The position numbers and the translations under genes are program-made. From Azolla caroliniana (Eukaryota > Plantae > Polypodiophyta): a DNA stretch of 64,000 bases. The stretch spans positions 1,178,001 to 1,242,000 of the forward strand of contig JBHGNT010000013.1 of assembly GCA_043228905.1 (NCBI GenBank), written 5' to 3'. This document shows, piece after piece, positions 7,635 to 57,979 of this stretch. Every line of letters begins with the position of its first letter. Positions within the stretch are counted from its first letter, which is position 1. The notes beneath the pieces are model-generated. The model was given only the letters and a program-made list of their open reading frames with translations, did no database searches and was not told where the DNA came from.

Positions 7635-8530
7635 TGTCGTAGTGTAATTCGTACACTACGTGAAAAATTACATTTTTGGTGTCTCCGGATAGGACATGGA
7701 GTACCCGGTGAGAACCGGAAGAAGGAACCGGTAAGGACCGAAACCGGCAAGGAGACCCGGCAAGAGCCGGATGAAGAAGGCCGGTGAGAGTCGGTGAGAA
7801 ACGGACGAAGAGATCGGTAAGGAGGTCCCGGTAAGAACCAGACAAAGAAAATTATCAAGCACCGGATGAAGCAGAACCGGAAAGAGCCGGATGAAGAAGG
7901 CCGGTGAGAGTCTCTCACCGGATGAAGAGACGTATTTGTAAATAGAAGAAAGTATAAAAGTATATATATTACATGCATAGGGCAAGATTCGAACCTTGCA
8001 CCTCCATGTTAATAATGTTAAGCCTTATCATTATAGTAGGGTATCATGAATTTTAAAGTTATACTAAACTTTATTCCATGTAAAATTTCTAGACATGCAT
8101 GGTACAAAAGTTATTCATGCATAGACACTCGAGTTAAAAAGAAAAAGATGAGGTAGAAAGCTAATCATGCACATGCAGTGTGCATGAAAACTAAAGATAG
8201 AAAAAGCATGATGCTTGCATGTGATAAACTGAGACTCTTCCAACACTATATAAGGAAGAGAGAAAGATGTATAGAGGTTGTTGATTATTTTACTAGGGTT
8301 GATTAATATAATATAATCGTGGGATCCACGAATTTGCTAACTATTTTTCTCTCTTAATTTGATTACTCACTAATACACTATACTCGTGGGATTCACGAGT
8401 TTTTCATATCCTTCTTTCTTACAATATATTTCATATTCTTAATTGCCTTAGAATTTTCATTCCTCCTAGTCCAAAACCCCAACGGTTCCCACCCGATTCA
8501 TGCAACGATCCGGAGCCGTAAGGCACGACA
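7635..8530 (+). repeat. G4 5' LTR (896 bp)
   Basis: Matches the rebuilt 3' LTR with ~12 differences by eye. TATATAA at ~8247. CCGG-rich internal repeats. Confidence 0.92.
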
Positions 8531-8534
8531 CAAG

Positions 8535-8551
8535 TGGTGAACCCGACGTGA
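8535..8551 (+). promoter_or_regulatory. G4 primer-binding site complementary to the tRNA-Trp 3' end
   Basis: TGGTGAACCCGACGTGA is the reverse complement of ...TCACGTCGGGTTCACCA, recalled as the 3' end of plant cytosolic tRNA-Trp. Confidence 0.8.
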
Positions 8552-8568
8552 ACACGGGTGGCAAGGAG

Positions 8569-13700: not shown

Positions 13701-14308
13701 TCGTAACCGGTTATATGCCGGCAGAACTCATGACCGGACAAGCACTGGTAATGCCGACGGAAACCGCAATCGCGACATGGACAATGCTACCATGGAAGGA
13801 AGAGATGATCCGGGAAGAACTACTAGCGGTCCAGATACGACAACTAGAGGGAAGACCGGAAGACATAGAGGAAGCAATACGCCGCCAACAAGAAGCGCGA
13901 TTCCGGAATAAAAGCCGGTTCGACACAAAGCACCGACTACGACCGCGGAAGATTGAAGAAGGAGATTGGGTGATTGTCTACGACAGTAGTTTGGATCATC
14001 AACATACAACGATGCAGAAGTTCACAAAAAGGTGGTTCGGACCATACGAGGTTCGGAAAGTTTTCAACAACGGAACTTACCGATTATGCGAGTTAGATGG
14101 AACAATGCTATGAGTGCCTATAGCTGGGAAACGGGTGAAGATTTTCAAGAAGCGGACTGATGAAGAACCCTATGTGATCCTAGACAAGACTGACCAGAAG
14201 GAGCAATTGGAAGAAGATCGCGGTGATGCGGAAAGTGAAGAAAGTGGATTAGAACTCATTGTCGACTTAAGGGGAGAATTGGAGGAAGCTTCGGATGAAG
14301 GTGAATAG
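10766..14308 (+). pseudogene. G4 pol (RT-RH-INT) with several premature stops
   Basis: WFTVPKKNGSLRFIQDL, DLYSGYDQ, LPQG, FLDD; RH IVTVDTS; INT GHRG, WMVDIV, DRGEL, YNPEANGKVER, WFGPY. Confidence 0.88.
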
Positions 14309-20000: not shown

Positions 20001-23000
20001 ACAATTCATTTACCCAGTGGAAGATTCTGAATGGGTTTCGCCCATTGTGGTGGTACCTAAAAAGAATGGAAAATGGAGGGTTTGTGTTGATTACAAACCT
20101 CTAAATGCGGCTACCAAGAGGGATCACTTTCCTCTCCCTTTCCAAGATGAAATATTAGATGAAATTGCGGGTCATGAAATGTACTCTGTTTGTGATGGCT
20201 ATTCAGGTTATTTTCAAATTCGTATTGCGGAAGAGGATCAAAAGAAGACGACATTCATCACTCCATGGGGATGCTTTGCATATCGATGCATGCCCTTTGG
20301 ACTCACAAATGCTGTTTTTACATTTAATCGTCTTGCTATTCATGTATTCCAACCATTCTTTGGAAAGTTTGTTAGAGTCTTTATGGATGACTTTGCAATT
20401 TATAGTAGCAGGAAAGACCATTTGGAAAAGGTTCGCTTGGCATTCAAAAGATTGGAGGAATGCAAAATGCAACTCAACCCAGAGAAGTGTCACATAGGTG
20501 AAAAGGAGGTGGTGATGCTTGGTCATGTGGTGTCTCAAGAAGGAATCAAAGTTGATAGCTCAAAGATTGAAGCAATTCAAAAGATGACAACACCCACGAG
20601 TATCAAAGATTTGGAGGTATTTGTTCAAAAAGTTCGTTACTTTGAACGATTCATTCATATGTTGGCCCAAATTCTCTATCCTTTTCGCATTATTCTTCGC
20701 ACCAACAACTTCTTGTGGACATCTACAACTGAAGAGCAATATGTAAGAATAAAAGAACTATTATGTAATGCTCCTATTCTAAAGCCACCTGATAGAACAT
20801 CTACCTTCTTTCTTTCTCTTAGTGTTGGATCTCATGCTATAGGAGCCATTCTTATGCAACAAGATTCTGAAAATAGGCTTATGCATCCTATATATTTTAT
20901 TAGTAAAGCCATGTCTGATGTAGAGAAAGAATTCTTAGAAGTAGAAAAGTGGATGTTAGCTCTTATATATGCTTGTAAAAAGTTTAGAAGCTTTCTACTA
21001 CCTCATCATTTTGTAATAATCACTAGCATGTCATTACTCCCATATGTACTCCAACATGTGAGCATTTCAGCACGAATTGCTAAATGGGCTCTACTATTGG
21101 CGGAGTTTGATTTTGAAGTCAAATTGGAATCAACTATGCGTGCCGAATTGGCGGATCTTCTCACCTTTAGAGAAACCTTTCATGAAGAAGACTTGGTAAA
21201 GCTACGAAAGGCACTTCCCGAGCCGGATATGGAGGATGCATTCACCTTATTCTTTGATGGGGCATTTCGCAAAGCCACAAACATAGCCGTGGGTGGGATT
21301 ATTCTCAAGGATCCTCAAGGAGACAGAGTAAAAAGTGAAGGTATTACATTAAGTGGTGTGAATTCAAATAATGAAGCGGAGTATGCTACCTTGTGTTATG
21401 GTCTTCGTCTATGTAAAGCTATGAAGATAAAAAGATTAATTCTTAAGGGTGATTCCTTATTGGTAATTAAACAAATTCAAGGCAATTGGAAATGTCAAAG
21501 TGATGGGCTTAGAAATTTTTATAAAGAAGCAATGAGTCTACTAAGGTCTTTTGAAAAGATACAGGTTAAGCATGTGGGGAGATTATACAATAAAGAAGCG
21601 GATGCATTAGCTCAAGCCCAATTAGATAAGATCAAGGAAGGTTTCGTTGGTGTTTTGGAGACGTGCAAAGATGTAGATTCCCTAGAGGAAGTACATAATT
21701 TTCTTAATAAAGGAGAGTTTCCAAATAACCTCAATGCTTTGCAAAGAAAGCGTTTGGTGGCAAAGGCTTCACAATATCATTTGGTGGGTGAAGATTTGTA
21801 CAACAAAGGGAAAGATGGAGTTTTACGAAGAGTTCCTAACAAAAGCGAGATTATAAAGATACTCTTTAAGTTGCATGAAGAAGTTTGTGGTGGGCATTTA
21901 GCCCATGATATAATGATAAGAAAGATTTTACTAATTGGTTTTACATGGCCTACTATCCATAGGGATGTGCATGATTGGTGTAGATCTTGTGATGCATGTC
22001 AAAAAGCGGGAATAAGACATCTACAAAGTGGACCTTTACAACCCATTGTGGTGTTTGCTCCATTCGAGAAATGGGGAATTGATGCAGTAGGACCTCTTCC
22101 GAAAACTCAACATGGTAAAGAGTTTATTTTGGTGGCCATTGACTACATGACAAAGTGGGTGGAAGCTATAGCAACTTCCTCGATTAAAGCCAAAGTGTAG
22201 CCCAATTTGTGTATAAGAATATTTGTACTAGATTTGGAGTTCCCATGGAGATTGTATCCGATCATGGACCCGGTTTTAGGAGTGAAATGTTAGCTTGTCT
22301 ATTAAGCAAGTTGAAGATTAAGCATCGATATTCAACGCCTTATTATCCTCAAGCAAATGGTGCAGTTGAGAAAGTGAATGGGCTTATAGTGAAGAATTTG
22401 ACAAAGTTAGTGCAAGACAAAGTAAGAACATGGGATAGGTATTTGGATGATACTCTTTGGGCTTATAGAGTTTCTTATAAATCCTCCACAGGTTTTACTC
22501 CTTTTTATTTGGTTTATGGAAAAGAAGCGTTACTTCCGATCGAACTTGAGATCAAAAGTAATAGACTAATGGAGGCATCGCATCGCTCAAAAGGAAATGA
22601 TGTGATGAGTCGTTTAGCGAGCAACCATCTACTACAATATTCAAGAGAAGAAGCTGTGGAGCATTACTTAAATCAAGCAATGAAGAGAAAGGAGGCATAT
22701 GACAAAAAACACAAGGGCAACCACATTGAAGAAGGATCATTGGTTCTTAGGTATGATAATAGATATGATTATATTCAAGGACAAAAGCTTGATAATAAGT
22801 GGGAAGGACCCTTTGTGGTTCACAAAAAGTATGACAACGGAAGTTACCAATTGAAAGATGTGGATGGAGCACTTCATTCTTATCGAGTGAACGGATGGCG
22901 CCTTAAAAAGTATGTAACTCGGGGACCTACTTATATTCCCCAAGTTACTAATGATATTGTTGATACGGATGGATGGGAGCAAGAAGTGGGCTTGTTTCCC

Positions 23001-24028
23001 CATACATTATTTTCTTAATAGTCCATATTGTAGACCCATCTTTCTCTCTATTAACAAAGAGGAAGATGGTAATAGTGATTATCTTTTTTATTTGTAGAGA
23101 ATGTGAGGTTTTTCCTACCGATTAGCGGGGGTTTTACTCACATCTTTTTATTTTCTTTTTATTATATCTCTCTCATTGTCTATAGCCAAGAGATTGGCGA
23201 GAGAGCTTTTGTTTGTTAAGTACTGCCAATAAGTGCTTCGCCATAAATGGCTTAGCCTCTAACAAGGGGGAGGGCTAAATGTGAAAGTGTTTTTAGAATC
23301 TAAGCCATTGAACATTAGGAGAATATAAAGTATAGATAATTCACCTTTTGAGGATAAGAACACGAACTAAGACCTTAGGGAAGAAGTCAAAAGTAAAAGT
23401 ACGAGACCAAGAGAAAAGTAAAAAGAGAAAACGCAGACTATAAAAAACAGTAAAAATAGAATGGTCATAACTCCCTCGTTGTTTATCCAAATATCACGTT
23501 TAAATATGGATTAGAAAGCTTGTAAAAAGAGCTTTCTATATCTTTTTAAATCGCTTAATTTGGATATCGGATGAGGGAGATATGACGATTAGAAGGTCGA
23601 TGTGTCATAGCTAAAAATAGGGAGATAAAAAGCTTCTAAAAATAGCATGAACGTGGATAAGAAGAGGAAGGTTATAAAAGAAGAAGTGATATTAGTGAGG
23701 AGGGGGGCTAAGAGTGAAGGCAAAAGAGTGGATGAGGAGTGTTAGGAAGAAGTGTCTTTGTGGAAGAGGAAGTGTCTTAGAAGAGGAAGGTCTTTGGTTT
23801 TAGTTCAATGTGGAGTTTGTCTCCTTTGTATTCTCTTGATGTTGGAATATCAGAACATTCTTATTTCTTGCTCGCTTTCTCTATCTTTTTTCTTAGTTTC
23901 TTGAGTTATACTCTCTAATCATAATTACCTAGAGCTATATAATATATTATGATTTTCAACTCCATCTAATCGGTTTGGTCAAGCCCTCATATAGTGTATA
24001 ACTATCTATTATCTTATACACCCTATCA
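17023..24028 (+). mobile_element. G5: nearly intact, very young Tat-type Ty3/gypsy element with an additional RNase H (TSD GCATG)
   Basis: 749-bp LTRs at 17023-17771 and 23280-24028, one difference seen. GCATG at 17018-17022 and 24029-24033. PBS TGGCGCTCCAGGGAGGG at 17776-17792. PPT AAGGGGGAGGG at 23264-23274. Confidence 0.95.
17860..23018 (+). CDS. G5 gag-pol polyprotein (gag, CCHC, PR, RT, degenerate RH, archaeal-type RH, INT) with one frameshift at ~22198
   Basis: ICYSCQEEGHISTRCP; ALVDSGA; WVSPIVVVPKKNGKWRVCVDY..FMDDF; FFDGA..NNEAEY..GDS..NKEADALA; H..H..C..C, WGIDAVGP, YYPQANGAVE, WEGPF. One inserted G restores KAKVVAQFVYKNIC. Confidence 0.9.
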
Positions 24029-24462: not shown

Positions 24463-27400
24463 GCGGAACTCATGCTCAATGTAGTTTCTAGTTTCTTAAA
24501 AACTTGAGTCCAAAAGTCACTAGTAAACTTGGAATCTTGATTACTAACAATATCCATCGGTAATCCATAAAAACAAAATAACTCATCAACAAATTGATAA
24601 GCCAATTGTTGAGCGGTTACTGTGATTTTGGTAGGAATAAATCTAGTCAATTTTGTTAGTCTGTCAACGACAACCCAAATGGCATTATGACCCCTCTGTG
24701 TACGAGGTAAACTAATAATAAAATCCATTGAGATACTTTCCCATTTGTTGTTGGGAATATCTAAGGGATGTAAAAAACCAGCAGCTTTAAGTCGTTCCGA
24801 CTTATTAATCTGACATTGGAAGCATTGAGTTACGTATTTATGCATGTCAGAGTGCATCTTAGGCCAGGAAAAAGTACTCGAGATGAGATCGAGTGTGCGT
24901 TGTATTCGAAGATGACCAGCAGATGGTGCATCATGACATTCATGAAGAATTTTGTGTTTTACGTTTGGTAAATGTGGAACACAGACCTTTCCACTATGGT
25001 AGAGCAAATCGTTTGTAATGTGAAAGGACGCCTTCGAGGGTTGGGTGCTAGTATCAACATCTAAACCAGATTCGGCTTTCGTCCAATATTTCGAAAAATA
25101 ACTGTCATCAAGGTATTTCCCTCGAAGGTGATCTAAAAGATCATATTTTATTTCCGTGAAGCTAAGCATGTTAACTTCATTAATGTGACTAAGAGCATCC
25201 GCAACAGTGTTCATAGAACCCTTGCGATACCATATGGAAAAATCAAAATCTTGCATAAGGTCAACCTAATGGCCTTTACGACCAACAAGATTTGGCTGGT
25301 CACAAAAATACTTCAATGATTAATGGTCTATTGTAACCAGAAATTTATTTTCATCGAGATAGTGCCTCCATGTTTTAAGTGCATGTATTACCGCAAACAA
25401 CTCTTTCTCTTGAACTGAATACCGAGATTGAGCAACATCAAGCTTCTTACTTTCAAAAGCAATAGGGTGACCGTCCTAATAAAGAACGACACCAATAGCA
25501 TAATCACTGGCATCAGTTTCGATTGAGAAAGGCTTAGAAGGGTTCGATAATAGAAGAGTGGGAGCTAGATACACATGCTCTTTGAGTGTCTCAAATTATT
25601 TGTCAAGTTGTTCATTCCATGCAATTGGTTTGACAGACTTACGTGGATGACCTTTTAAAAGGTCAGTTAATGGCGTAGTCAATTTGGAATAGTTACGAAT
25701 TGATTTTCGTAAAAATCCAACAAACCCTAAGAATGATCACAGTTCACGAATATTACAAGGAATGGGCCAAAGTTTAACCTTTTCAATACGAGAAGGTTCA
25801 ATTTCAACACCATTTTCCGTAATTAAATGACCTAGGTACACAATAGATTTTGGGAAAAAATCAAAATTTGAATGTTTTGCATAGAAAGAGTTGTCACGCA
25901 ACTTTTGCAAAACAAATCGAACATGTTGAACATGATCTTGCAAGGTACGGATATATATCAAAATATCATCCAAGAATACGACAACAAAATCACCGAGTTG
26001 ATCTCGGAAAACGTCGTTCATCGCTTGTTGGAATGTGGCTGGAGCATTAGTCAACCCGAAAGGCATGACTAAAAACTCATAATGGCCATAGTGAGTACGA
26101 AAAACGATTTTAGGAATATCATCCTCGGCAATGTGAATATGATGATAACCTGTTCGTAAGTCAATTTTCGTAAAATATTGAGCTCCATGCAAACGATCAA
26201 TCAAATCATCAGCACGAGGTAACAGATATGCATTTTTAATTGTCATTTTATTCAAACGGCGATAATTAATACCCATCTGCCATGAACCTTCCTTCTTCTT
26301 TACTAATAGAACTGGCGCACCCAAGGTGATTTACTATACCTAATGTGGCCCATACTCAAGTATTCCTTAAGTTGTTTAGCGATCTCATCCTCTTCTAATC
26401 GACTAAGTCGGTAAGGTGGAATGCTCACAGGAGCAGCACCAGGGATGAGTTCAATTTGATGGTCTACATTACGTTTTGGTGGTAAAGTAAGCGGCAATTC
26501 GTTAGGAAAAACGTCTTGAAAATCATCTAAAATAGAGTCAAGTAATCGTTGTTCATAATGTGGTAATGGTGTGGCGTCAATATTAAAATAATAAAATTAA
26601 AGCGCAGGATCAATTACACACGAATAAATTAATGAACTTGAATACTCACCTAAAGATTTAGAAGACACAAGTGAACAAGAAGGGAGTTTGGAACATTGAA
26701 TAAAATGTTTACAATTATTAAGTTCAAATGTGATTGAGTGATTAACCCAATCAATGGACAAAGAAGGGTTTTTATTAAAAAACCAAGGGTATCCTAAAAT
26801 GATATCTGTGGATTGTAGTTTCATAACATGAAAGTCAAGCTTCTCCAAATAGGTATCTATCTGAATTGGCAGTTGACAAACAATGCCACTGATGTATTGA
26901 ACACTTCCATTTTCCATGTGAACTTGATAGATATGTTCACTTGCGTTTATGTGGAGTTCCATTTGCTGCACAATGTGATCATAAAGAAAATTGTGAGAAC
27001 TACTGGAATCAAACAAGAAATGTGCTTGTGTTCCATTGATATACCCGACTGCTCGGAGTAAATCATTAGGTCCAAGTAAATGTGAAGGAAAAGTGCATTC
27101 ACATGAACTTAAGTGGTTGGTATGAACTTCAAAAACATCAAAAGACTCACCTGTGTGACTCGTAGATTTGTCTTGAGGAGGGGTGTTCATTGACTTCCTC
27201 TCAAGATGACGACAGGTATCCTTTGTGTGGCCCCGCTTCTTGCAATATGCACAGAAGAGGTTAGGTTTCTTGGGGTTGCGGTCAAGAGTATCATTGGATT
27301 GCTTACGTTTCCCAATGAACTTGACATTTGGAGTTTTGACGAACTTAGGTTTATTGTGGTCTTTCTTGGAAGTCCTATGGTACCGAAGTACAATGTTGGC

Positions 27401-28100
27401 GAATTCTTCAAAAGTTGTGGGGTCCTTGTCATGGACAATCCAATGGTAATCCCCATTAGGAATACCATTAAAAAAGCAAGCAACAAACCATTTCTCACCC
27501 GTAAGTCCCGATTTTTGGATTTGGGTCCGAGCATGATGCACATAATCCTCAAGAGAGGTAAATGGCTTACTCGACAACGTGAGCAAGTGTTGCGCTTGTT
27601 CAGTTTGAGAAGGTGGCTACAAAAACTGTTTCTTAAAAACATCAACGAAACCTTCCCAAGTTGTGGGTAAGTTCTTTGCAGTCCTTAGGCTGCGCCACCA
27701 AGCAGTAGCTCGGCCACCTAACTCACGACCGACGTAACCAATTTTTACAGCATCGGGCTTGGGGTGGACCTCAAAGTGAGACTCCCAACGACCAAGCCAA
27801 GTGCTAATGGCCTCCTCGGTTCTTTCTTTCTTATCTCCCTTGAATGGTGTTACTACGAAAGAAGGCTCACCTTATTTCTTGGACTCAATAGTCAATTCTT
27901 GGAATTTCATTTCAATGCCATATTGGCCTGGCTCATTTCGGCCAATCAAGGTAGTAGGGAGCAATTGCTCAATAGTGATCTCAACTTGTGTGCGAGATGC
28001 GGATTGGAGTTGAGAGAACTCGGTCGGAGAGATTGCTCCAACAACGTTCAAAACTTGTTCCATGATGCAAACTGTGGGTATGCAATATAAATAAGGAGGT
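24463..28100 (-). pseudogene. G3 gag-pol (disrupted)
   Basis: CCHC FCAYCKKRGHTKDTC, protease HFLFDSSSSHNF, RT FTKIDLRTGYH..YGHYEFLVMPFGL..VFLDDILI, INT ECHD..GH..CFQCQ..WESISMDF. Confidence 0.88.
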
Positions 28101-32995: not shown

Positions 32996-35981
32996 ACTAT
33001 AAATAATTATTTGATGAGGCGATCCTTCCAAGAAATGTCGCCATTGCTCGAAAGAGTCAACCACAACTAGTAACTCCTTGTCATGCACCTCATAGTTTAT
33101 CTCCGTAGCAGTAAATTTTCTCGAGTGAAATGTGGATGGGACTACCCGTCCTTGACTAGTTGGGATAGGATACTCCCCAATGCAAAGTCTGACGCATCTG
33201 CTTCAATGGTAAATGGCTTTTCAGGATCAATATGTGCTAACATTGGAGCTGGTGTGAATGCCTCTTTGAGCTGAGTAAAGGTTGTGTCCGCTTCAATAGT
33301 CCAAACAAACGATTGATTCTTCTTGGTGAGTTGGGTGAGAGGCAACACGATCTTTGAATAATTTTGTATGAATTTGCAATAGAAGTTAGCAAATCCGAGG
33401 AAACATTGGACGTCTCGAACAGAACGTGGGGGTTGTCATTCCAATATTGTTGACTTTTGCTAGATCCATGAAGATACCCTTAGATGAAATAGTATAACCC
33501 AAGAATTCGACTTGTTCGCTATCAAAACTGCACTTCTCAAGTTTGGCATACAGACCATACTTTCTTAAGCATTCAAGTACTTTCCGAACATGTATATCAT
33601 GCTCCTCCTGTGTTTTAGAGTAAATCAACAGATAATCTAAATAGATTATGAGAAAGATATCCAGAAAATCCCAGGAAATGTCATTTGCCATATGTTGGAA
33701 AACTGCGAGTGCATTTGTGAGCCCGAAAGGCATGACTGTATACTCGAAATGACCATACCGAGTGCAAAATGTTGTTTTCCACTCATCTCCCAGTTGAATG
33801 CAAACAAGATTATATGCACCCCTTAAACCAATCTTTGTAAAATTTTTTGCCCCACCAATGCGCTCTAAAAGACAGGAGATTAAAGGAAGAGCATACCTAT
33901 TTCTTATGGTGACTTTATTTAATCCCCGATAGTCCATGACCAAATGAAGCGATCCATCCTTTTTCTTCACAAAAAATATAGGAGCACCGAATGAAGATTT
34001 TGAATGTCGAATAAACCCATGTGCAAGATTCTCCTCAATGTATTCTCGAAGAACCTCAAGCTCAGTTGGTGATAGATTGTAGATCTGACCCCATGGTGGC
34101 TCTTTTCCTGGTTGGAGGTCAATGGGACAATCGTATGGCCGATACTTTGGAAGTACACTAGCTTTGACTTTGTCGAAAACATCAACATATTCTTGGATGT
34201 ATGGATTCCCTTGAGTCACACTAGAAGGTGTCACTGATATTCCAAATAAGAAAAGTTCCTCCTTTCCTCCCACTTGGAACAATTGTTGCAATGTGATGGT
34301 TGAGATTTGGTGAAAGGAAGATGGTGCACTGGTAGAACTATATTCTTTAAGGGAATACTCTTGGGTTCGATCCTTAGCAATGATGTTTTCTATAGAAGGG
34401 CACCAAATTTCTTGCCTCCTCCAATCTATTCGTGGGTTATGTAGCTCGAACCATGGCAAACCAAGGACAATTGGATGCTCGAGGTATATTAAAGGAAACT
34501 ACACATCCTAAATCACCTAAGAGTATGTGTATTGGCTCTAACTCTTCGAATATCTTCCCGGAAGCTATGGGACGTCCATCAATCACTACTACGGAAACTA
34601 GGCAAGGATATTTGATGTTTTTGGGCAAAATCTCTATTCATGAAACAAGAATTGGCTCCGGTATCTAAAAGGGCTTGGACGTGAAGTTGGCAACTTTGTG
34701 TCCTCACTTGTAGTTAGGTTGAGAAGACTCTACTAACATGCTTGGATGAAATGGAACCTACACTAGGTTGTATAGAGCTAGGGTTGTCCAACCAAATGGC
34801 TCCTATTTTGGCTAGACTTATTCGTTTGACTCCTCTTCTAATTGGATTAGGACTTCAAACTTATTGGACAAGGGTGGATTATTCATAATATTAGAATCAC
34901 TAAGTGCTTCTAAAATGTTGGACTCATTTTTATTGTCATAGTGAATTTGATTTACCTGACGTCTCAGCCTACGAGAGCAATGAATGGCTATATGTCCTGG
35001 ACCTCTGCAATATAAGCATAGATGGTTTGCTCAGCGTCGTTGCTTCTCTTTGTCCGACAATGGTCTTCGATGTTGGGTCATATCGATCTCTATGGGTATC
35101 GGCCTATCCATTGGGGTCGGGCTACATGTTTGTCTTGGGGTTGGAGCAGGGCTATATGTTTGCCTTGGAGACGATTGCGTTGTTACTGATGCATAAGTTG
35201 GCATGTATCTTGATCTTGTTATTTGTTGTTGTCGCTCACATTGACGCTCAAAAAGACGATTATCACACCGTATTGCTCGACTAATAGCGTATGTAAGTGA
35301 GTTTGGATCCTTAGGGAAGGTAAGAAGTAAGTCCTTCACATCACTACGAAAACCGGAATGAAATTGCTCCATTAGGGATTGTTCATCCCAAGGAATATCG
35401 CTTGCGATGAGACGAAAATTGGTTGCATATGTTGAGGTTGGTTGATCACCTTGACATAGTGTACGAATCTTGTTGATTGTCGTTCTTGCCCCATCTGTAT
35501 CTCCGAAGCAAGCCTTAAATTCTTTGACAAACTCCTCGAAATTATGCAATAGAGGAGAATTTGTCTCTAGTAATGGAGCAAACCATGACAATGCTATGCC
35601 AGTCAATAAGGTGCCCACTAACCCGACTCGTGATGCAACTGTCGGATAACGCGTGGGATGCATTTGGATTACCAACAGCACTTGATTCAAGAAACCTTGG
35701 AAATGCGCCCTTGAACCATCGAATTTAGCTGGGAGACTGATTTTGGGCTTGTTAATACTTCCTTGACCTTCGACACTTTGTTGTTGTAAAATTACAATTG
35801 TCAATTCTAATTGTTGCACCCATCGTGTAAACTCTTCTTCTTGTTGTTGCTTCTCAACAATAACCTTTTGTAGATCCCTAAGAAGACGTTGATTCTCTAA
35901 TTCAAGAGATGCGAACTTGGATTTAATATTCTCTATTTCTGCGACAAGGGTGAGATATTCTTCCGAGTTGATGGCAACCAT
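32996..35981 (-). pseudogene. G1 gag, protease, RT and RNase H (disrupted)
   Basis: Gag [85 protein letters not shown]. Confidence 0.85.
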
Positions 35982-40363: not shown

Positions 40364-40562
40364 CGAGAGGGGAGGCGCAGGTTCTTTCATCATTCTTTGC
40401 GTTCTCTCTGTTTTTAGCCCTGCTTTCCTTTCCTCTGTCTCTGTCTTTCTTCTTACCCTAACCCTAACCCTAACCCTAACCTAACGCCGTTTCCTTATCT
40501 TCCCTTCGCAAATTCCGGATCTTTTCTGCCTGCTCTCTCTTCTGCCATCGCTTCCACGGTTC

Positions 40563-41035
40563 GTATGTTTCTGTATCTGTTCAGAGAGAGAGAGAGAGAG
40601 AGAGAGGTTTATTTCGCTGTATAGGGTATCACACACACTCTCTCTATATCTTTCTGAGAAAGAGAGACAGAGAGAAATCGAGGGAAGAAGAATCCCCTCG
40701 AGTGAGATGATATACATTTACACACACACACACACGCACGCACGCACGCACGCATATATATATGCACAGAGCTTTTTTCCCATCGTTAGTGGAGCTAGAA
40801 AGGATAGATCTGGTGTTTTCCTCTCGTTTTGGTGTTGTTTCGGAGCTTTTTTTCCATCGTTAAGTGGAGGTAGAAAGGATATTACTTGTTATGGACTGAA
40901 ATGTGCCTTCAATGGTCGAAGATAGATAGATAGATAGATAGATAGATATAGATCTGTGTGGAAGGCTTTGTTTGTTCAACGTTTTCCATTTTAAAAAATC
41001 TTACTCTGCTGTGTATGTATTGTGTATTGTGACAG
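40563..41035 (+). other. Predicted leader intron 1
   Basis: Donor GTATGT at 40563 (alternative GT at 40559); acceptor TGACAG ending at 41035. Microsatellite-rich interior. Leader introns are typical of plant SAMDC genes. Confidence 0.6.
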
Positions 41036-41068
41036 AAAGAAGAAAGGGAGATTGAACAAAACATTCGA

Positions 41069-41077
41069 ATGTTATAA
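41069..41077 (+). promoter_or_regulatory. SAMDC 'tiny' uORF (ATG TTA TAA) overlapping the small uORF start by one nt (TAATG)
   Basis: Same geometry as the known plant SAMDC tiny/small uORF pair. Confidence 0.9.
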
Positions 41078-41865
41078 TGGAGACTAGAGGAGGCGTGAAG
41101 TCAAGTTCACACCAATATGAGAATCCCCTCGGCTATACAATCGAAGATGTCCGGCCAAATGGTGGGATCGAGAAGTTCCGCAGTGCTGCATACTGCCACG
41201 TATGTCTCTTCTTAATCATCATGAAAATTCTCGTCTAATGCCGTTTCTTCTTGAGTGATTTTTATATTTCAAAAGAATTCTTACATCTTACTGCACATTT
41301 TTCTACACGAGGAATGTAAATTTCAATCTATAATTGAATTATCAAAATACTTGGGATCTATAGATATCTATATATCTGTTAGATATGTGTGACCTCTTGA
41401 TGTTTTACATTGTCTCCTACTGTTATATCACAAAGCATCTATCTGTATTCCGAAGTGGACGATGTTATTATATACATGATAATGCATGAACTTTTGATGT
41501 TTTACATGGTCTCCTACTATATATCACAAGGCATAGGTCTCTCACTGTTATATAACAAGGCCATCTGTATTCTGCAGAGGATGGTGTTTATCATATATAT
41601 GATAATGCATGAAATTTTGAGGAAATAGCTAGCATCTTTCTGCTGTTTCACAGAAAATATTGTCGGTTTTAAACACATGGACATTCATTCACACATATCT
41701 GTGTCCCTGTCTGTATTGTCTCGCAAAGAATGTTGGATGTTCTTATTCTATAGTCTTACTAGAAATTTGTTCTTGTCAAGAAAACTCTTTTTATGTTTTC
41801 ATATCAAGCATTCACTAATGTTGTTCGTCTTTTGCTCTTTTCAGTGTGCCAGGAAGCCCTCCTGA
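41077..41865 (+). CDS. SAMDC conserved-peptide 'small' uORF, 47 aa, exons 41077-41199 and 41845-41865
   Basis: METRGGVKSSSHQYENPLGYTIEDVRPNGGIEKFRSAAYCH/CARKPS*, matching the plant SAMDC uORF consensus YEAPLGYSIEDVRPNGGIKKFRSAAYSNCARKPS. GT..AG intron 41200-41844 in phase 0. Confidence 0.95.
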
Positions 41866-41891
41866 TGACTGTGCCAGGGAGAGCAATTTAA
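41865..41891 (+). promoter_or_regulatory. Third uORF (MTVPGRAI*) overlapping the small-uORF stop (TGATG)
   Basis: TCC TGA TGA CTG: ATG at 41865-41867, TAA at 41889-41891. No other ATG before 42000. Confidence 0.55.
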
Positions 41892-41999
41892 CAAGAACTT
41901 CCTAGTTTTTGTTAGGATAGGTAGTTAATACATATTTGGGATTCGGTGTTCGTAGGCTCTTCTGTTACTTCATTTCTTGTCTTTTGTCGAGGCGGCGTG

Positions 42000-44423
42000 A
42001 TGGGCATTCTTTTCTACCCAGAGGAGGGTGAAGTATTGCAGCATGATGATGTCCATTTAGATTCTAGCGAGCATTTTGAGGGTGTGGAGAAAAGGTTACA
42101 AGTTGAATTTCTCCATTCTGATTGTTATGGTGATTCCTCCAAGGGCTTGCGAAGCCTATCCAGGCATGATATTGAACAAGTTCTTTCGGCAGCTAGATGC
42201 AGCATTGTGAAGAAACTAAGCAACGATGAGGTTGATACTTATGTGTTGTCGGAATCTAGCCTTTTTGTGTATAGTCACAAGGTCATCATCAAAACATGCG
42301 GAACTACGAAACTTCTCAATGCAGTTCCAGTGTTGCTTGACCTGGCTTCTAGGCTGTCTTTGAGAGTGAAGGGATGTAAGTACAGCCGAGCTATGTATGA
42401 TCTTCCTGAAAAACAGCCGTTTCCTCACGGAAGCTTCTGTGATGAAGTCGAGTTCTTGAATGGTTTCTTTGGGAATCTCGGAACGGGCAGCAAAGCGTAC
42501 GTGTTGAATGATCCGACTGGACCTCAGAGTTGGCACATCTACTCTTCATATGTGACTTTTGATGATGGTTTAGATGGTGAAGCTGTAATCTATACATTGG
42601 AGATGTGCATGACACAATTGAGCCGAAAGAAAGCGGCCAAGTTCTTCAAAGCCATTTGTAATTCAGCTTCAGAGATGACTAGGGAATCAGGCATTGGCAA
42701 ATTGCTTCCAAATTCGGAAATTTGTGACTTTGCCTTTGACCCGTGTGGATACTCCATGAACTCAGTGGAGAGGGGAGCTGTGTCAACTATCCATGTAACC
42801 CCTGAGAAAAAGCATAGTTATGCAAGCTTTGAAACAATGGGTTATGGCCCAGAGGATGTGGATCTTTCTGCTCTAGTTAGTGATGCCCTGGGTTGCTTTC
42901 AGCCAGGGGTTTTCTCTGTTGCAGTTCATGTTAGCGGTTTATCAGATGCCAATCTGGTGAGTGGTAACTCGTGGCTCTCGCCTGTTTCCATTTATGGTTA
43001 TACTCATACTTCTACTAGTGTGGAAGTGCTGCCTGGAGATGGGGCCATCATGTTCCAGACCTACAGGGAGGATTCATCATCGTTACTCTCCAAAGCTCTG
43101 ACATTCTCCCTAAAAAGTGAAATTCCTGTGAAAGGATCAGATAGCGGCAACTTGTGGAGTGTGGACAAGAGCCTTGATATTGCTCTCTCTGAGGTAGAAC
43201 AGGTTTTGTGTGCTATTAATCCAGTGTTTATTGGTAAGACCCACAAGGATGTCGATGAAACGATGAAGAATTGGATTATCAAGAGCAAAACAGAGGAGGC
43301 CTTTTATGTGATGGATGTAGGTGTAGTTTTGCAGCTATGGAAGACATGGAAAGTATTGATGCCACGTGTTCATCCATTTTATGCTGTAAAGTGCAACTCG
43401 GATAGAGTGCTATTGTCTCTATTATCGGCTCTTGGAGCTGGTTTTGATGTTGCAAGCAAAGCAGAACTTGACCTTGTTCAAGGCCTGGGTGTTGGGTCTG
43501 ATAGGATCATTTTTGCAAATCCTTGCAAGTTACCATCTCATGTTGTTCATGCAGCCAGTCAAGGGGTTCATCTTACAACCTTTGACTCTGAATCAGAATT
43601 ACGCAAGCTTCATAAACTGAATGCTAAGGCAGAGGTAGTTCTTCGCATTCGAGTCTGTGATCCTGGTGCAAGGTGTCCTCTTGGTGTGAAGTATGGTGCT
43701 GAGATGGATGAGTGTGAGGATTTGCTTACAGTGGCCAGAACACTTGGTCTGCAAGTAGTTGGTGTTGCTTTTCATGTGGGCAGTGGTGCCTCGGATGCTG
43801 CATCTTTTGCATCGGGAATCTACCAAGCAAGACAGGTATTTGATATGGCAAAAAGACTTGGCATAACATCCCTAAGGCTATTAGATGTTGGAGGGGGGTT
43901 TGTTTCCGATGGTGGTCATGGTGTTTCTTTCGAGGCTGCAGCTAAGTCCATCAATGAAGCTCTAGATATGTATTTCCCATGTAGTATGGGGGTATCTGTG
44001 ATAGCTGAGCCAGGTCGTTTCTTTGCCGAAGAAACATATACACTCGCAACACAAGTGTTTGGTAGCCGTGTGCGTAGAGGGAATGGAGGAGAGCTAGTTG
44101 AGTATTGGGTCAATGATGGGATTTATGGGTCCATGAATTGTTTGCTGTATGATCATGCAATATTATCGGTAAGGCCATTATGCATTTCATCAAACTCAGA
44201 TATCGGCAGGAATGAGGATGACAATGGAAAATGCCGGTCTACAATATTTGGTCCCACATGCGATGGTCTTGATACTATTATGGAAGGTGTCTCATTACCC
44301 CGCATGAGTTGTGGCGATTGGCTTGTTTTCTCAAGGATGGGGGCCTATACCAAAGCAGCTGCTTCCACTTTCAATGGTTTCGATATCAGTGGGATGAAAA
44401 CAGTTTGTGTTTGTTCCATATAA
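42000..44423 (+). CDS. SAMDC-ODC: Bifunctional S-adenosylmethionine decarboxylase proenzyme / ornithine decarboxylase fusion (807 aa, intronless)
   Basis: SAMDC aa ~1-357: FEGVEKRL, YVLSE|SSLFV self-cleavage site, KTCGTT, TLEMCM, FDPCGYSMN, TIHVTPE, SYASFE. ODC aa ~430-807: FYVMD, PFYAVKCN (PLP Lys464), GFDVAS, IIFANPCK, FHVGSG, LDVGGGF, AEPGRFF, NDGIYGSMNC, LYDHA, GPTCDGLD, MGAYT, FNGF. The ATG at 42000 has a strong context (GTGATGG); the ORF-track GTG at 41946 is unlikely to be the start. Confidence 0.95.
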   Translation: MGILFYPEEGEVLQHDDVHLDSSEHFEGVEKRLQVEFLHSDCYGDSSKGLRSLSRHDIEQVLSAARCSIVKKLSNDEVDTYVLSESSLFVYSHKVIIKTCGTTKLLNAVPVLLDLASRLSLRVKGCKYSRAMYDLPEKQPFPHGSFCDEVEFLNGFFGNLGTGSKAYVLNDPTGPQSWHIYSSYVTFDDGLDGEAVIYTLEMCMTQLSRKKAAKFFKAICNSASEMTRESGIGKLLPNSEICDFAFDPCGYSMNSVERGAVSTIHVTPEKKHSYASFETMGYGPEDVDLSALVSDALGCFQPGVFSVAVHVSGLSDANLVSGNSWLSPVSIYGYTHTSTSVEVLPGDGAIMFQTYREDSSSLLSKALTFSLKSEIPVKGSDSGNLWSVDKSLDIALSEVEQVLCAINPVFIGKTHKDVDETMKNWIIKSKTEEAFYVMDVGVVLQLWKTWKVLMPRVHPFYAVKCNSDRVLLSLLSALGAGFDVASKAELDLVQGLGVGSDRIIFANPCKLPSHVVHAASQGVHLTTFDSESELRKLHKLNAKAEVVLRIRVCDPGARCPLGVKYGAEMDECEDLLTVARTLGLQVVGVAFHVGSGASDAASFASGIYQARQVFDMAKRLGITSLRLLDVGGGFVSDGGHGVSFEAAAKSINEALDMYFPCSMGVSVIAEPGRFFAEETYTLATQVFGSRVRRGNGGELVEYWVNDGIYGSMNCLLYDHAILSVRPLCISSNSDIGRNEDDNGKCRSTIFGPTCDGLDTIMEGVSLPRMSCGDWLVFSRMGAYTKAAASTFNGFDISGMKTVCVCSI

Positions 44424-46877
44424 GTAGAGTTTATATTATTTTCATACTAAGATTTGCCGTCGCTGCCGCCTCTTAATGATCATAGTAGTTGGTATATCTT
44501 TATATAATTCAGCATATTATCATATTTCTAGCCTTTTGCAAACCGTAACCTAGCTTTAATGATAGTACTTTCCTTGCTTTTGAAGATCAAGTCATTATAT
44601 ATTTTTGTGTTCTTGGTATTAAGTTTATACAACTAAATACTGTGTTTGGGTACATCATAATGTTTTGATTATGTGATCATGGTGGAAAATTGAGTCAAAG
44701 ACTGGTAATTAGAAAGGATAAATAAACATGGTGGAAAAAAGGTTTCTTCAATGTTGACTGTAACTGAAAAACTCGATCTGTGGCCGTAACAATACACGGG
44801 GTACTCCAGCCCAATTTATTGCCTAAAAGTAAGTGCTTATCTAAAATTGGAGCCATAGCATTAGCTAAAATTGGCGCCATAGCAGTTGCTGACTTTTTTC
44901 ACATATGAGTAGGTTCACTTAAATGGATTCCTATTTATTGTTGTATGAAAGCTAATGATAGAACGCATTCATGTTGGTGACCTCTTAAGACATGAGGAAA
45001 TTTCATCACCATTGGATGAGATGGAAGAACCAATTTGGGGCATTGCTTTCCTTCCAAGCCTATGGAATGAGCATTCCCCTACAAATTACAATGGCTTTTA
45101 TCATAACAAAATTGTAGATTTAGTTTAGTTGGCCTTGTCAACAACTTAATTGTTCATTCAAGAGTATCATCCAGTTGGAGGAATTATCTTCCACACGTGT
45201 CTTATCTCAAGAGGTGGAGGAAATTTTTTATTCGACATTTTGACCATAACCATGTCTTAGGATGTTTTTACTTTCCGACCAACATTTTCTAATTAATTGA
45301 AGACTTTTCCATTATGGACCAAAGCTTCTTGCACCATTTTGTATCCAGGTAATGGGGAACAACCTTGCCTTCTTCAAACGTTTTTTGTGGCGAAGATTCT
45401 AGTGAAAAAAGAACGTTGTCTTTTGATAAGTCTTACCGAAGTTCTTTAGCCTTAAATGTTAATGGATTTTGATCCCCCAATACAAATAAGTGTTACCAAA
45501 GTTCTTTAGACTTAAAAGTTCATGGATTATTATAATTATCTACTAGAAAAAAATTTGGATACCTACCAAACAAATACTGTTATCATGGAAGAATACTATA
45601 TATATAGTGGGAGTAGAACCTAGTAGGGTGATTATAGTTGGAAACACGTGATTCAAGGTTGAGAAAGTAACGAAGTGTTTGAGATTTGTTGGGTATTTAA
45701 GAAATATAGCCAAGTTTTCCAAACTACATGAATAACCTCATGGTGCACAATTCACAATGACAATAATTATTTTGGTTGTTTTTAAATCTTACGGGTAAAT
45801 ATCCAAAATGTGCGGTATTTTTATATTGATCTCCACAAGATAAAGCAAATGTTTACTGGAATGGCTTCCATATGAGCAACAAATCGAAAAATTTGTGCAT
45901 GGCTAAGATGCAAAGTGTGATTGCTCTTACTCAAGCTAATTATTGAAGTGGTGCTGAATATTTTTGGAGGTGACTTTTTTTGACATGTAGGTATGTTCAA
46001 ATCTTCTTCTTTATGGCCATACCAATGACATACCACAGCAAAGTAAGGAACCTCCTTGTTGCAAAGTTAAAACACGTGTTGAAACTAGCTTTTCAAAGGA
46101 AGGACCGGATTATATGTGTAATAATTGGACTTATCCATCAATGCCTATATTTGAAATTGTTTACGTGCTTGCTTAAGATGGTTTTATTGTATATGTGATG
46201 GTTTTGCGTCAACAAAGAAGCAATGTTCTTATTATTATTAGTTGAGTTATACACCATGATAAGGTTTACATACATGTAATTTTGCAAGTGAGCAAAAATA
46301 TGTAATTCAATGGTCTTTCACAACCGCATAAGAGCATCAAATGAATGAACAAGGTTTGAAAACGAGATACATGGTAAAGATTATTGGAAATGATTGTGCC
46401 TTTTTCTCCTTTAGTAACTTGGTGGTTCCTAACTATTTCAAAAGTGTCAATTGCAAACTTGGAGGTGTCAGATGGTTGGAAACATGCTTTGTTAGAATTT
46501 TGGAGTCATGATATTGATCCGCCATCACACAATCATCAATTCCAATATGTTCAAGCCATTTTCAATAGCATTTTCTACCAAAGGGAGGTAAAAGATCAAC
46601 AAATGTTCACTTTTGTAAAAAAACAATTTCCAAAAAAGGAGCCTAAACCCTAAACCCTAAACCCAAAATTTCTCATTAGTTAGGAGACATTTTTACAGAA
46701 AGACTATACAAGGTGGCTTATATATAATCGGGGAATCACCCCTGACCGAGTTCAAGAATATGAGACTAAGTACATATCCTCTCATACTTTCTACTTAATG
46801 TAACCGGTGATGAATGTCACTATTTTATAGCTCTAGGTTCACTTTTGTAGATTTATTTATTTTACATAATGTGATAC

Positions 46878-50672: not shown

Positions 50673-52125
50673 GGAATAATCGTGATCAATTATATGAAGA
50701 CATGGGAAAGGTCAGAAATGGCAGAAAGATGCTTGACGTAGTCAATACAGCTGTCTCCTCGCTTCCTATTGGTAATGAGGAAGAGGGTGAATGGTCTGGA
50801 CAATGTGATGGTACCGGAAATATTATCAATGTCAGGGGTCTAGGAAAGAGTGGGAAGACCGTCCTGATGGGATTATTAGATGAAAGTGCAGGCTGGTACC
50901 CTATTAGAATTGTGGCAAGACACGGAAAGAAATGGAAGGTGAATCCACCAGTCGAAGAGGTCGAGGAGGATTGGATCTTGTACATGGTTGAAGGCAAGCC
51001 TCTCGAGCGCGTAGAATGGGATCCCGCTGAATATAGGTGGAAGGGAGAACAAGCTAAATCACTAGGTTTCTTCGAATACTCGACGCGCTTGGGGAGAAAG
51101 TTAGGTTCGTATCATGAGAAATGTGCCAACAAGTGGACCCATGCAGCTATCGATTCAGTCTTCTTGGATAGAACCAGGAGCAGGATATGGAACTCATCCC
51201 TTCCCGAGCGGATCAAAGTGTTTTTCTGGTTAATCACCCATCGGGCTGTTCCAACGGGAGAGTGGCTTGGGAATAGAGGCGACATGAGTGGTTGCAAGGT
51301 GTGTAGTGCGAGCTTGGAGGACATCGCTCATTGTTTGTGGTGCTGCCCACGAGCGCAAGAAATCTAGCTGAGGAGCTTAAGAATCTTGGCTCGTTTTGGG
51401 GTTGAGGTTCATGTATCGAGCGCAGTAATCACTTGGCTGGCCACTGAATCGGCCTCGTGGTTTCAAGGGTGGGATGGAAACAGTCCTTCTTTAATGGTGA
51501 AGCAAGGATCTGTGCAACCAACAACGCAAGGAGGTTTATTCTTCTTACATGAACGCTACGTGGACATATGGGTATTAGTGGTCGGCCTTACGATCTGGCA
51601 AGTGTGGGTATCTCGGTGCAAGGAGACCCTCGCAGGTAAACGAACCCCACCGGCTGAGAATTTAATGATGATCTGGTTTAATCTTATTTCTACGTTGCGA
51701 GGTGAGTTTGAAAGTCTTCAAGGGCCATCTGATGCAAGTGAAGAAGCTAGAGCTCGATTCCTTCGGAAATGGAGCGGTTCGTTGATGCTGCAGATAATGG
51801 ATGGTAAAGTGAAGTGGAATTATCAACCACCGCGGTGGTTGTTCCCTCCAAGTGTTCCTAACATCTAGATGGGTGCTGCCATGAGGAGCGAATGGAGGAC
51901 ATCTATGCTGAATTCTGTTTTGTATGAGGCTCACGTGGAGAATATGTGTTCGAGTAATGCTATACACATAGAATGATGTGGTGTTTTGGAGTTGTTTTTT
52001 TATGTTGTTTCATCTACACATTGTTTTCCTTTGACATGCAAGATGTCTTGTAAGATATGAGTTGTAAATGATTCCTTTGTACATTCTTAACTAATGGAAG
52101 TAGATGTTTTTGGAAAAGAAGAAGA
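50673..52125 (+). mobile_element. 5'-truncated LINE with 18-bp TSD, copy 1
   Basis: AAGAAAGTAGAGAACATG at 50655-50672 and 52126-52143. ORF with zf-RVT IWNSSLPERIKVFFWLITHRAVPT..CKVC..EDIAHCLWCCP and one internal stop. Purine-rich tail. Confidence 0.88.
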
Positions 52126-56526: not shown

Positions 56527-57979
56527 GGAATAATCGTGATCAATTATATGAAGACATGGGAAAGGTCAGAAATGGCAGAAAGATGCTTGACGTAGTCAAT
56601 ACAGCTGTCTCCTCGCTTCCTATTGGTAATGAGGAAGAGGGTGAATGGTCTGGACAATGTGATGGTACCGGAAATATTATCAATGTCAGGGGTCTAGGAA
56701 AGAGTGGGAAGACCGTCCTGATGGGATTATTAGATGAAAGTGCAGGCTGGTACCCTATTAGAATTGTGGCAAGACACGGAAAGAAATGGAAGGTGAATCC
56801 ACCAGTCGAAGAGGTCGAGGAGGATTGGATCTTGTACATGGTTGAAGGCAAGCCTCTCGAGCGCGTAGAATGGGATCCCGCTGAATATAGGTGGAAGGGA
56901 GAACAAGCTAAATCACTAGGTTTCTTCGAATACTCGACGCGCTTGGGGAGAAAGTTAGGTTCGTATCATGAGAAATGTGCCAACAAGTGGACCCATGCAG
57001 CTATCGATTCAGTCTTCTTGGATAGAACCAGGAGCAGGATATGGAACTCATCCCTTCCCGAGCGGATCAAAGTGTTTTTCTGGTTAATCACCCATCGGGC
57101 TGTTCCAACGGGAGAGTGGCTTGGGAATAGAGGCGACATGAGTGGTTGCAAGGTGTGTAGTGCGAGCTTGGAGGACATCGCTCATTGTTTGTGGTGCTGC
57201 CCACGAGCGCAAGAAATCTAGCTGAGGAGCTTAAGAATCTTGGCTCGTTTTGGGGTTGAGGTTCATGTATCGAGCGCAGTAATCACTTGGCTGGCCACTG
57301 AATCGGCCTCGTGGTTTCAAGGGTGGGATGGAAACAGTCCTTCTTTAATGGTGAAGCAAGGATCTGTGCAACCAACAACGCAAGGAGGTTTATTCTTCTT
57401 ACATGAACGCTACGTGGACATATGGGTATTAGTGGTCGGCCTTACGATCTGGCAAGTGTGGGTATCTCGGTGCAAGGAGACCCTCGCAGGTAAACGAACC
57501 CCACCGGCTGAGAATTTAATGATGATCTGGTTTAATCTTATTTCTACGTTGCGAGGTGAGTTTGAAAGTCTTCAAGGGCCATCTGATGCAAGTGAAGAAG
57601 CTAGAGCTCGATTCCTTCGGAAATGGAGCGGTTCGTTGATGCTGCAGATAATGGATGGTAAAGTGAAGTGGAATTATCAACCACCGCGGTGGTTGTTCCC
57701 TCCAAGTGTTCCTAACATCTAGATGGGTGCTGCCATGAGGAGCGAATGGAGGACATCTATGCTGAATTCTGTTTTGTATGAGGCTCACGTGGAGAATATG
57801 TGTTCGAGTAATGCTATACACATAGAATGATGTGGTGTTTTGGAGTTGTTTTTTTATGTTGTTTCATCTACACATTGTTTTCCTTTGACATGCAAGATGT
57901 CTTGTAAGATATGAGTTGTAAATGATTCCTTTGTACATTCTTAACTAATGGAAGTAGATGTTTTTGGAAAAGAAGAAGA
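56527..57979 (+). mobile_element. 5'-truncated LINE, copy 2 (from the tandem duplication)
   Basis: Copy 1 shifted by 5854, including the TSD. Confidence 0.88.

Follow-up and report, generated by a model that had tools for sequence, protein, structure and literature searches.

A fern member of a green-lineage gene family in which S-adenosylmethionine decarboxylase is fused to ornithine decarboxylase

The stretch of Azolla caroliniana DNA analyzed here (hereafter the window: 64,000 nucleotides of assembly GCA_043228905.1, contig JBHGNT010000013.1, positions 1,178,001 to 1,242,000 of the forward strand; coordinates below count from its first nucleotide) carries at 42000..44423 one open reading frame (ORF) in which an S-adenosylmethionine decarboxylase (SAMDC, also AdoMetDC) is joined through a hinge to an ornithine decarboxylase (ODC). 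We consider it probable that the gene is the fern form of an ancient gene, orthologous across the green lineage, that encodes a bifunctional SAMDC/ODC enzyme, and that its product works in the manner proposed below. The gene is real, expressed, and conserved, and it is transcribed as one mRNA across the junction of the two halves. Its product is complete in both decarboxylase domains and is orthologous to fusion proteins of other green plants and algae.

The main ORF, on the + strand like every other feature of the gene, runs from an ATG at 42000 to a stop at 44421-44423 and encodes, in a single exon, a SAMDC-hinge-ODC proenzyme of 807 amino acids; use of an in-frame GTG at 41946, upstream of this ATG, would lengthen the protein to 825 amino acids. 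An earlier note on this DNA, made from its letters only, had described one uninterrupted 807-residue SAMDC-ODC frame, and an ORF scan, Pfam, and Protein Data Bank (PDB) matches confirm that description. The AdoMetDC (pyruvoyl) domain occupies residues 24-355 (42069..43064), as delimited by Pfam, by alignment to the potato and human enzymes, and by an AlphaFold 2 (AF2) model; the SAM_decarbox profile (PF01536) matches these residues with an E-value of 1.6e-100 over profile positions 2-342 of 343. The ODC domain, which has the pyridoxal phosphate (PLP)-binding alanine-racemase fold, occupies residues ~435-800 (43302..44399) according to Pfam, the alignment to mouse ODC (PDB 7odc), and AF2. Within it Orn_Arg_deC_N (PF02784) matches residues 443-676 (E 1.1e-71) and Orn_DAP_Arg_deC (PF00278) spans residues 435-781 (E 3.7e-18), a nested order that is typical of the fold. 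In the PDB, the C-terminal half matches mouse (7odc) and human ODC over 384 residues (412-795, E 5e-106 to 1e-106), and the N-terminal half matches potato SAMDC (1mhm, residues 87-356, E 3e-77 to about 1e-77) as well as human AdoMetDC. Chance matching was considered as an explanation and is excluded by these E-values.

The catalytic residues listed in the earlier note are all present at the positions it gave, in both halves. By alignment, E85|S86, C100, S252, H265, E269, and E278 of the SAMDC half correspond to human E67|S68, C82, S229, H243, E247, and E256, and F26, E27, E30, and F246 additionally correspond to human F7, E8, E11, and F223; the predicted self-cleavage site, E85|S86 (42252-42257), lies in the motif YVLSESS. 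In the ODC half, K464 (the PLP lysine, 43389-43391, in PFYAVKCN), H592, E670, D718 (within LYDH), C754, and D755 correspond to mouse K69, H197, E274, D332, C360, and D361, the GGGF at 631-634 corresponds to mouse GGGF 235-238, and D483, R673, and Y783 correspond to mouse D88, R277, and Y389. Twenty-three catalytic or cofactor positions are kept in 46-48 of 48 aligned fusion proteins, and the SAMDC set is kept in 47-48 of the 48. Between the domains lies a poorly conserved linker (residues ~359-429), whose identity to orthologues is 14-23% vs 36-75% in the domains and whose length is 71 amino acids here and 58-177 among the orthologues. In the AF2 model (40 orthologues) the predicted local distance difference test score (pLDDT) is mostly >90 in the two domains, and disorder is predicted for the N-terminus (residues 1-24) and for a flexible hinge core (residues 360-394, 43077..43181, pLDDT <50). 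The predicted template modeling score of 0.58 is typical of two modules that would fold independently.

Transcript data bear on the possibility that the ORF is an assembly or read-through artefact, that is, that neighbouring genes were mis-joined or that the ORF is never one protein. These data come from four public runs belonging to four different studies, each of which contains 59-72% of the sampled words of 41000-44600; we take the runs as RNA because a spliced joint is seen in them. Aligned to 40600-44900, their contigs cover 41035-41199, skip 41200-41844, and continue from 41845 to 44559-44584, and over this interval neither the introns nor the region past the 3' end has any contig coverage in the four runs. 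Single contigs extend across SAMDC, hinge, and ODC in run X1 (42597-44149, 1553 nt), run X20 (42597-43579), and run X3 (43007-44029), and overlapping contigs of run X2 together cover 42595-44168. Among the transcript contigs of the four studies there is no joint, insertion, or deletion within the coding sequence (CDS), and the only two indels among them, at 41926 and 41962, both belong to a minor variant of the leader. The earlier note had named a stop, a splice, or a faulty join between the domains as grounds for rejecting the gene, and the contigs show none of these. The contigs differ within the CDS by 25 synonymous and 11 non-synonymous changes spread across both halves, an excess that we read as the signature of a constrained coding sequence. 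Furthermore, the same ORF, of 803 codons, is present in independent genomic contigs of a relative whose protein is 93% identical, and orthologues are found in chromosome-scale assemblies. We found no support for an artefact, the sole caveat being that the public runs come as contigs and not as raw reads, and we regard this explanation as scarcely credible.

The mRNA has at least three exons, and the whole 807-codon CDS lies in the last. Leader exon 1 (40409..40558) has an approximate 5' end and a 3' end fixed by the GT donor at 40559. The contigs of X1, X3, and X20 have loose ends of ~150 nt upstream of 41035, the consensus of which matches 40528-40557 with one mismatch; from this join and the sequence, leader intron 1 (GT..AG) was placed at 40559..41035, with a boundary that was set by hand and is ambiguous between G40558 and G41035. 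Leader exon 2 (41036..41199), represented by contig pieces 41035-41199 in X1, X3, and X20, contains the starts of both upstream open reading frames (uORFs) and is followed by leader intron 2 (GT..AG, 645 nt, 41200..41844), for which the joint 41199>41845 is seen in the contigs of the same three runs. The 3' untranslated region (44424..44584) has an approximate end, since coverage ends at 44559-44584 in all four runs. Two simple repeats lie near the start of the gene: a telomere-like short (CCCTAA)n repeat at 40457-40485, inside or just upstream of the first leader exon, and a (GA)n run at 40586-40607, shortly after the exon 1 donor.

The first of the two uORFs is tiny (ATG TTA TAA, 41069..41077), and its final base is the A of the ATG that opens the second, small uORF, which has 47 codons, is split by intron 2 (41077-41199 + 41845-41865), and ends in ...CARKPS before a stop at 41863-41865. 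Six of these codons lie past leader intron 2, and the stop is 134 nt ahead of the main ATG. The overlap of one base lies in the sequence ATGTTATAATGG at 41069-41080. The exon 2 part of the small uORF, starting at 41077, matches the AdoMetDC_leader profile (PF08132, E 2.5e-20); this match is to the exon 2 part alone, and the spliced peptide is a script translation. Contigs from three studies join exon 2, and with it both uORF starts, to the exon of the CDS, and the plant-type dual-uORF pair is thus present in the mature mRNA. The earlier note had called the SAMDC half and its uORFs plant-type, a view that is upheld by the PF08132 match and the tiny/small uORF pair.

A full-length protein search returned at least 120 homologues of ~780-1030 amino acids that have all three Pfam domains and in which 95-100% of the query is aligned. 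The closest among the matches listed, P0001 (93% identity), comes from two environmental assemblies. Fern matches, at 55-63% identity, are from Adiantum nelumboides and A. capillus-veneris (P0004/P0006), Ceratopteris richardii (two paralogues, P0012/P0014), Pteridium aquilinum, and Psilotum nudum. Orthologues are also found in the lycophyte Selaginella (P0019) and in the liverworts Marchantia (P0016), Riccia, and Calypogeia, in streptophyte algae, Zygnematophyceae included (Mesotaenium, Spirogloea, Netrium, Closterium, Klebsormidium [P0032], Chlorokybus, and Mesostigma), and in many chlorophytes (Trebouxia, Micractinium, Coccomyxa, Bryopsis, Tetraselmis, Cymbomonas, Nephroselmis, and others). 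The green fusion orthologues are collinear with the Azolla protein over its full length, at 40-63% identity apart from P0001, and nothing categorical sets them apart from it; the Azolla copy has a short hinge (71 amino acids vs 58-177) and a faster-evolving SAMDC half. No seed plant or moss is among the listed matches of this search, though the database searched is rich in proteomes of both, and these predominate in searches with single domains.

Gene structure is shared as well. A single-exon CDS (called where its length equals three times the protein length plus the stop) with an upstream uORF is found in the genomic sequence of the close relative (L001/L002), Marchantia (L003/L004), and Adiantum (L005). 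The tiny/small uORF pair is present in all three, and it reads ATGTTATAATGG in Marchantia and ATGACATAATGG in Adiantum. The idea that the orthologues are annotation chimeras is countered by transcript-derived matches (EukProt; Logan contigs of ~3 kb). Land-plant fusion proteins are named in GenBank as hypothetical, as 'S-adenosylmethionine decarboxylase', or as 'ornithine decarboxylase'. Several algal ones, from Trebouxia and Cymbomonas (P0039, P0042, and P0059), bear the name 'Mitochondrial 2-oxoadipate and 2-oxoglutarate transporter' and have only SAMDC and ODC domains, which looks like a propagated mis-annotation.

Phylogenetic trees of each domain were quick IQ-TREE runs in which support is given only as the Shimodaira-Hasegawa-like approximate likelihood ratio test (SH-aLRT). 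The ODC tree was rooted on animal ODCs, and the SAMDC tree was effectively rooted on the chlorophyte fusions and is without non-green stand-alone SAMDCs. In the ODC-domain tree the Azolla protein falls in a fern fusion clade (SH-aLRT 98) within a land-plant fusion clade (96), and the SAMDC-domain trees likewise place it in a clade of fern fusions (99); these positions place the gene among leptosporangiate-type ferns. Both domain trees are congruent with the organismal phylogeny. The taxon distribution and this match of both trees to the species phylogeny date the fusion to the common ancestor of chlorophytes and streptophytes or earlier, and hence to a time before land plants. A 377-residue Pteridium aquilinum transcript product (P0121) has SAMDC only and is nested in the fern fusion clade (99), and some transcriptomes contain, for a single fusion gene, a short isoform beside a long one (P0425/P0516, P0149). 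P0121 and the short forms may be SAMDC-only isoforms, recent fissions, or mere truncated assemblies.

The earlier note had instead proposed an independent fusion in the plant lineage, arguing from the plant-type SAMDC half and uORFs; on this reading SAMDC and ODC would have merged recently in the lineage of this plant. The position of the apicomplexan fusion outside the green ODC clade could also be cited in favor of such an event, since the green fusion may then be independent of the Plasmodium type. We nonetheless consider a recent merger very improbable and give up that proposal, because collinear full-length orthologues extend from ferns, Selaginella, and liverworts through streptophyte algae to chlorophytes, because both domain trees track the species phylogeny, and because Marchantia and Adiantum share with the Azolla gene both an intronless CDS and the uORF pair.

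Independence from the Plasmodium-type fusion, a further element of that proposal, is a separate question. The bifunctional AdoMetDC/ODC of Plasmodium self-processes and assembles through its ODC dimer, and the P. falciparum protein has ~1400 amino acids with large parasite-specific inserts. Plasmodium was represented in our comparison by the 1070-residue fusion of the apicomplexan Cardiosporidium cionae (P0410). This protein agrees with the fern enzyme in its three domains and in their order (AdoMetDC, hinge, ODC), and its catalytic motifs align with those of the Azolla protein, whereas identity is 31-37% per domain and it contains large inserts that are absent from the 807-residue fern protein. 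We know of no apicomplexan fusion gene that bears the plant uORF pair. All green ODCs, fused and stand-alone alike, form a clade (96) that does not include the ODC domain of P0410, a long branch that is itself weakly attached (support 21). The SAMDC domain of P0410 has diverged too far for placement (branch length 7.5, with unresolved basal nodes) and failed as an outgroup. It is plausible that the fusion arose separately in the green lineage and in apicomplexans, though with thin sampling this is unproven: the ODC tree is compatible with the independence that the earlier note suggested and stops short of demonstrating it. By analogy, the fern protein would work like the Plasmodium enzyme, but we do not assign it to the apicomplexan clade.

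Canonical plant SAMDCs, such as potato SAMDC (1MHM) and Arabidopsis SAMDC1, are ~50-58% identical to the fern SAMDC half, and their genes likewise have a uORF pair overlapping by one base, a small uORF that ends in ...RKPS, an intronless main ORF, and leader introns; they differ in encoding 355-400 amino acids that stop where the fern hinge starts, without ODC. The SAMDC trees unite all SAMDCs of land plants in a single clade (94-98), within which fused and stand-alone sequences are interleaved roughly by plant lineage; only algal fusion proteins lie outside it. The approximately unbiased (AU) test rejects the best tree uniting the 22 stand-alone SAMDCs (delta lnL 129.6, p = 2e-5), a grouping that was defined post hoc, after the tree had been seen, and in a tree whose sequences are all green apart from the apicomplexan one. 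One reading of this result is that loss of the ODC half, perhaps repeated, turned the fusion into canonical plant SAMDC with its uORFs; another is that the paralogues exchange sequence.

The ODC half has a different relation to its stand-alone counterparts. Stand-alone plant ODCs (Solanaceae, Ginkgo, the lycophyte lysine/ornithine decarboxylase, and Sphagnum) are ~48-58% identical to the fern ODC half and have the same Pfam pair, whereas they are encoded by separate genes and form a land-plant clade of their own (95-97) near Klebsormidium, apart from the ODC domains of the fern, lycophyte, and liverwort fusions. A tree in which the ODC domains of the fusions are monophyletic withstands the AU test (p = 0.50), and for this reason we do not claim that stand-alone plant ODC was derived from the fusion. 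None of the best 120 ODC matches is a named stand-alone ODC of a fern, though the Adiantum and Ceratopteris genomes are in the database, which hints, without establishing it, that the fusion could be the only ODC of ferns. We tentatively raise the possibility, to which we give somewhat less than even weight, that the fusion with its dual uORFs is the ancestral green SAMDC, from which the stand-alone SAMDCs arose when duplicate copies lost their ODC half, perhaps on several occasions, and that in ferns the fusion may be the sole ODC, placed under a uORF polyamine sensor.

We propose the following mode of action for the fern enzyme, based on the conserved residues and on analogy with characterized relatives. 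The N-terminal half is most likely self-processing, with the cut between E85 and S86, which would give a beta chain of ~85 residues and a chain of 722 residues whose N-terminal serine would become the pyruvoyl group; the chain lengths that the earlier note gave hold, conditional on self-processing. The SAMDC half would then produce decarboxylated S-adenosylmethionine. The 722-residue chain would also bind PLP at K464, and its ODC half would produce putrescine, the two halves being tethered by a disordered hinge of ~35-70 residues. The ODC halves are predicted to pair head-to-tail with shared sites, to each of which one subunit would contribute K464 and its partner C754. Because the ODC half is expected to form the usual shared-site homodimer, the holoenzyme would be an (alpha-beta)2 assembly. 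One mRNA and one polypeptide would supply the two rate-limiting decarboxylases in a fixed 1:1 ratio, and at high polyamine levels the uORFs would repress translation of both activities jointly, since both are encoded on one mRNA behind polyamine-sensing uORFs. Such repression would place ODC under feedback; to our knowledge, plants are without antizyme, and we know of no other feedback control of ODC in plants.

A number of points weigh against this interpretation. The SAMDC half lies on a long branch (0.43-0.44 substitutions per site in this lineage), and identity to Adiantum is 58% for the SAMDC half (42057-43073) vs 75% for the ODC half (43287-44399); constraint on the two halves appears to be uneven, yet all catalytic residues are retained. 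Ferns carry stand-alone SAMDCs too, as do lycophytes and liverworts, and because ferns own such genes the SAMDC half of the fusion could be partly redundant or specialised. Both enzyme activities of the fern protein are predicted from residues alone, and whether ornithine, lysine, or arginine is the substrate of the PLP half cannot be fixed by sequence. In addition, the public runs are labelled 'RNA?' and stored as contigs, from which transcript ends and expression level cannot be read.

The faster evolution of the SAMDC half in this lineage and the retention of stand-alone SAMDCs in ferns would also be in keeping with an enzyme in which one half is catalytic and the other is regulatory or a scaffold, comparable to the AdoMetDC prozyme of trypanosomatids or to antizyme inhibitor. 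A second possibility is that lysine or arginine has become the substrate of the PLP half: relatives of ODC are known as arginine decarboxylase (PBCV-1 A207R, PDB 2nv9, E 2e-75 to the fern protein) or as lysine/ornithine decarboxylase, and stand-alone lycophyte homologues are labelled lysine/ornithine decarboxylase by their source. We think it unlikely that either applies. Dead paralogues such as the prozyme and antizyme inhibitor have lost such catalytic residues, whereas here and in nearly all orthologues all the catalytic and cofactor residues that we checked are kept. D718, which aligns with mouse ODC D332, is retained, and synonymous changes predominate in both halves. We continue to favor an enzyme in which both halves would be active, the PLP half as an ornithine decarboxylase.

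The fusion gene is isolated among retroelements, with gag, protease, reverse transcriptase, and integrase pieces on both strands, and no polyamine-linked gene lies nearby within the 64-kb window. An apparently intact Ty3/gypsy-type polyprotein ORF of 1487 amino acids (17737-22200, +) encodes gag, reverse transcriptase, RNase H, and an integrase zinc-binding domain and is directly followed by an integrase-core ORF fragment, the whole stretch occupying 17737-23018 (+). Upstream of the gene, the minus strand carries retroelement pieces (26597-27586, 33386-34459, and 35031-35981) that match aspartyl protease, reverse transcriptase, and gag/Ty3 capsid. Two ORFs of 221 amino acids (50702-51367 and 56556-57221, +), 5854 bp apart, match the Pfam family zf-RVT with identical scores and are probably two copies of one element of the type without long terminal repeats, or a tandem duplication. 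A run of ORFs at 8500-14113 (+) with weak reverse transcriptase and DUF4100 matches, unusually strong positive GC and AT skew, and a GC content of 0.47-0.49 is probably a degraded retroelement.

The fern gene is one well-supported member of a neglected, already known fusion family and is not unique. The hint in the earlier note that it might be of an undescribed kind did not survive, since orthologues are already in GenBank and a Micromonas accession is listed under both enzymes. An AdoMetDC-ODC fusion was reportedly mentioned for the green alga Micromonas by Green et al. 2011 (Mol Microbiol). One table in a 2018 review of microalgae lists Micromonas XP_003057072.1 under both ODC and SAMDC, a double listing that fits this fusion. 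Full-text literature searches returned no paper on the fusion in ferns, lycophytes, or liverworts and none that assays a plant or algal member.

Textbook plant polyamine biosynthesis is drawn from angiosperms, in which SAMDC and ODC are separate genes, and we know of no polyamine feedback on angiosperm ODC. Our results show that in ferns, lycophytes, liverworts, and green algae both rate-limiting decarboxylases are encoded together in one expressed gene, and that at the land-plant loci examined this gene stands behind polyamine-sensing uORFs. At ~800 amino acids and without the parasite inserts, the protein is a compact counterpart of a malaria drug-target enzyme and would be a tractable model of regulation between the two domains. 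The SAMDC tree poses the testable question of whether canonical plant SAMDC was derived from the fusion. If the fusion is indeed the ancestral green SAMDC and the sole ODC of ferns, non-seed plants would have uORF feedback on ODC in place of an antizyme system.

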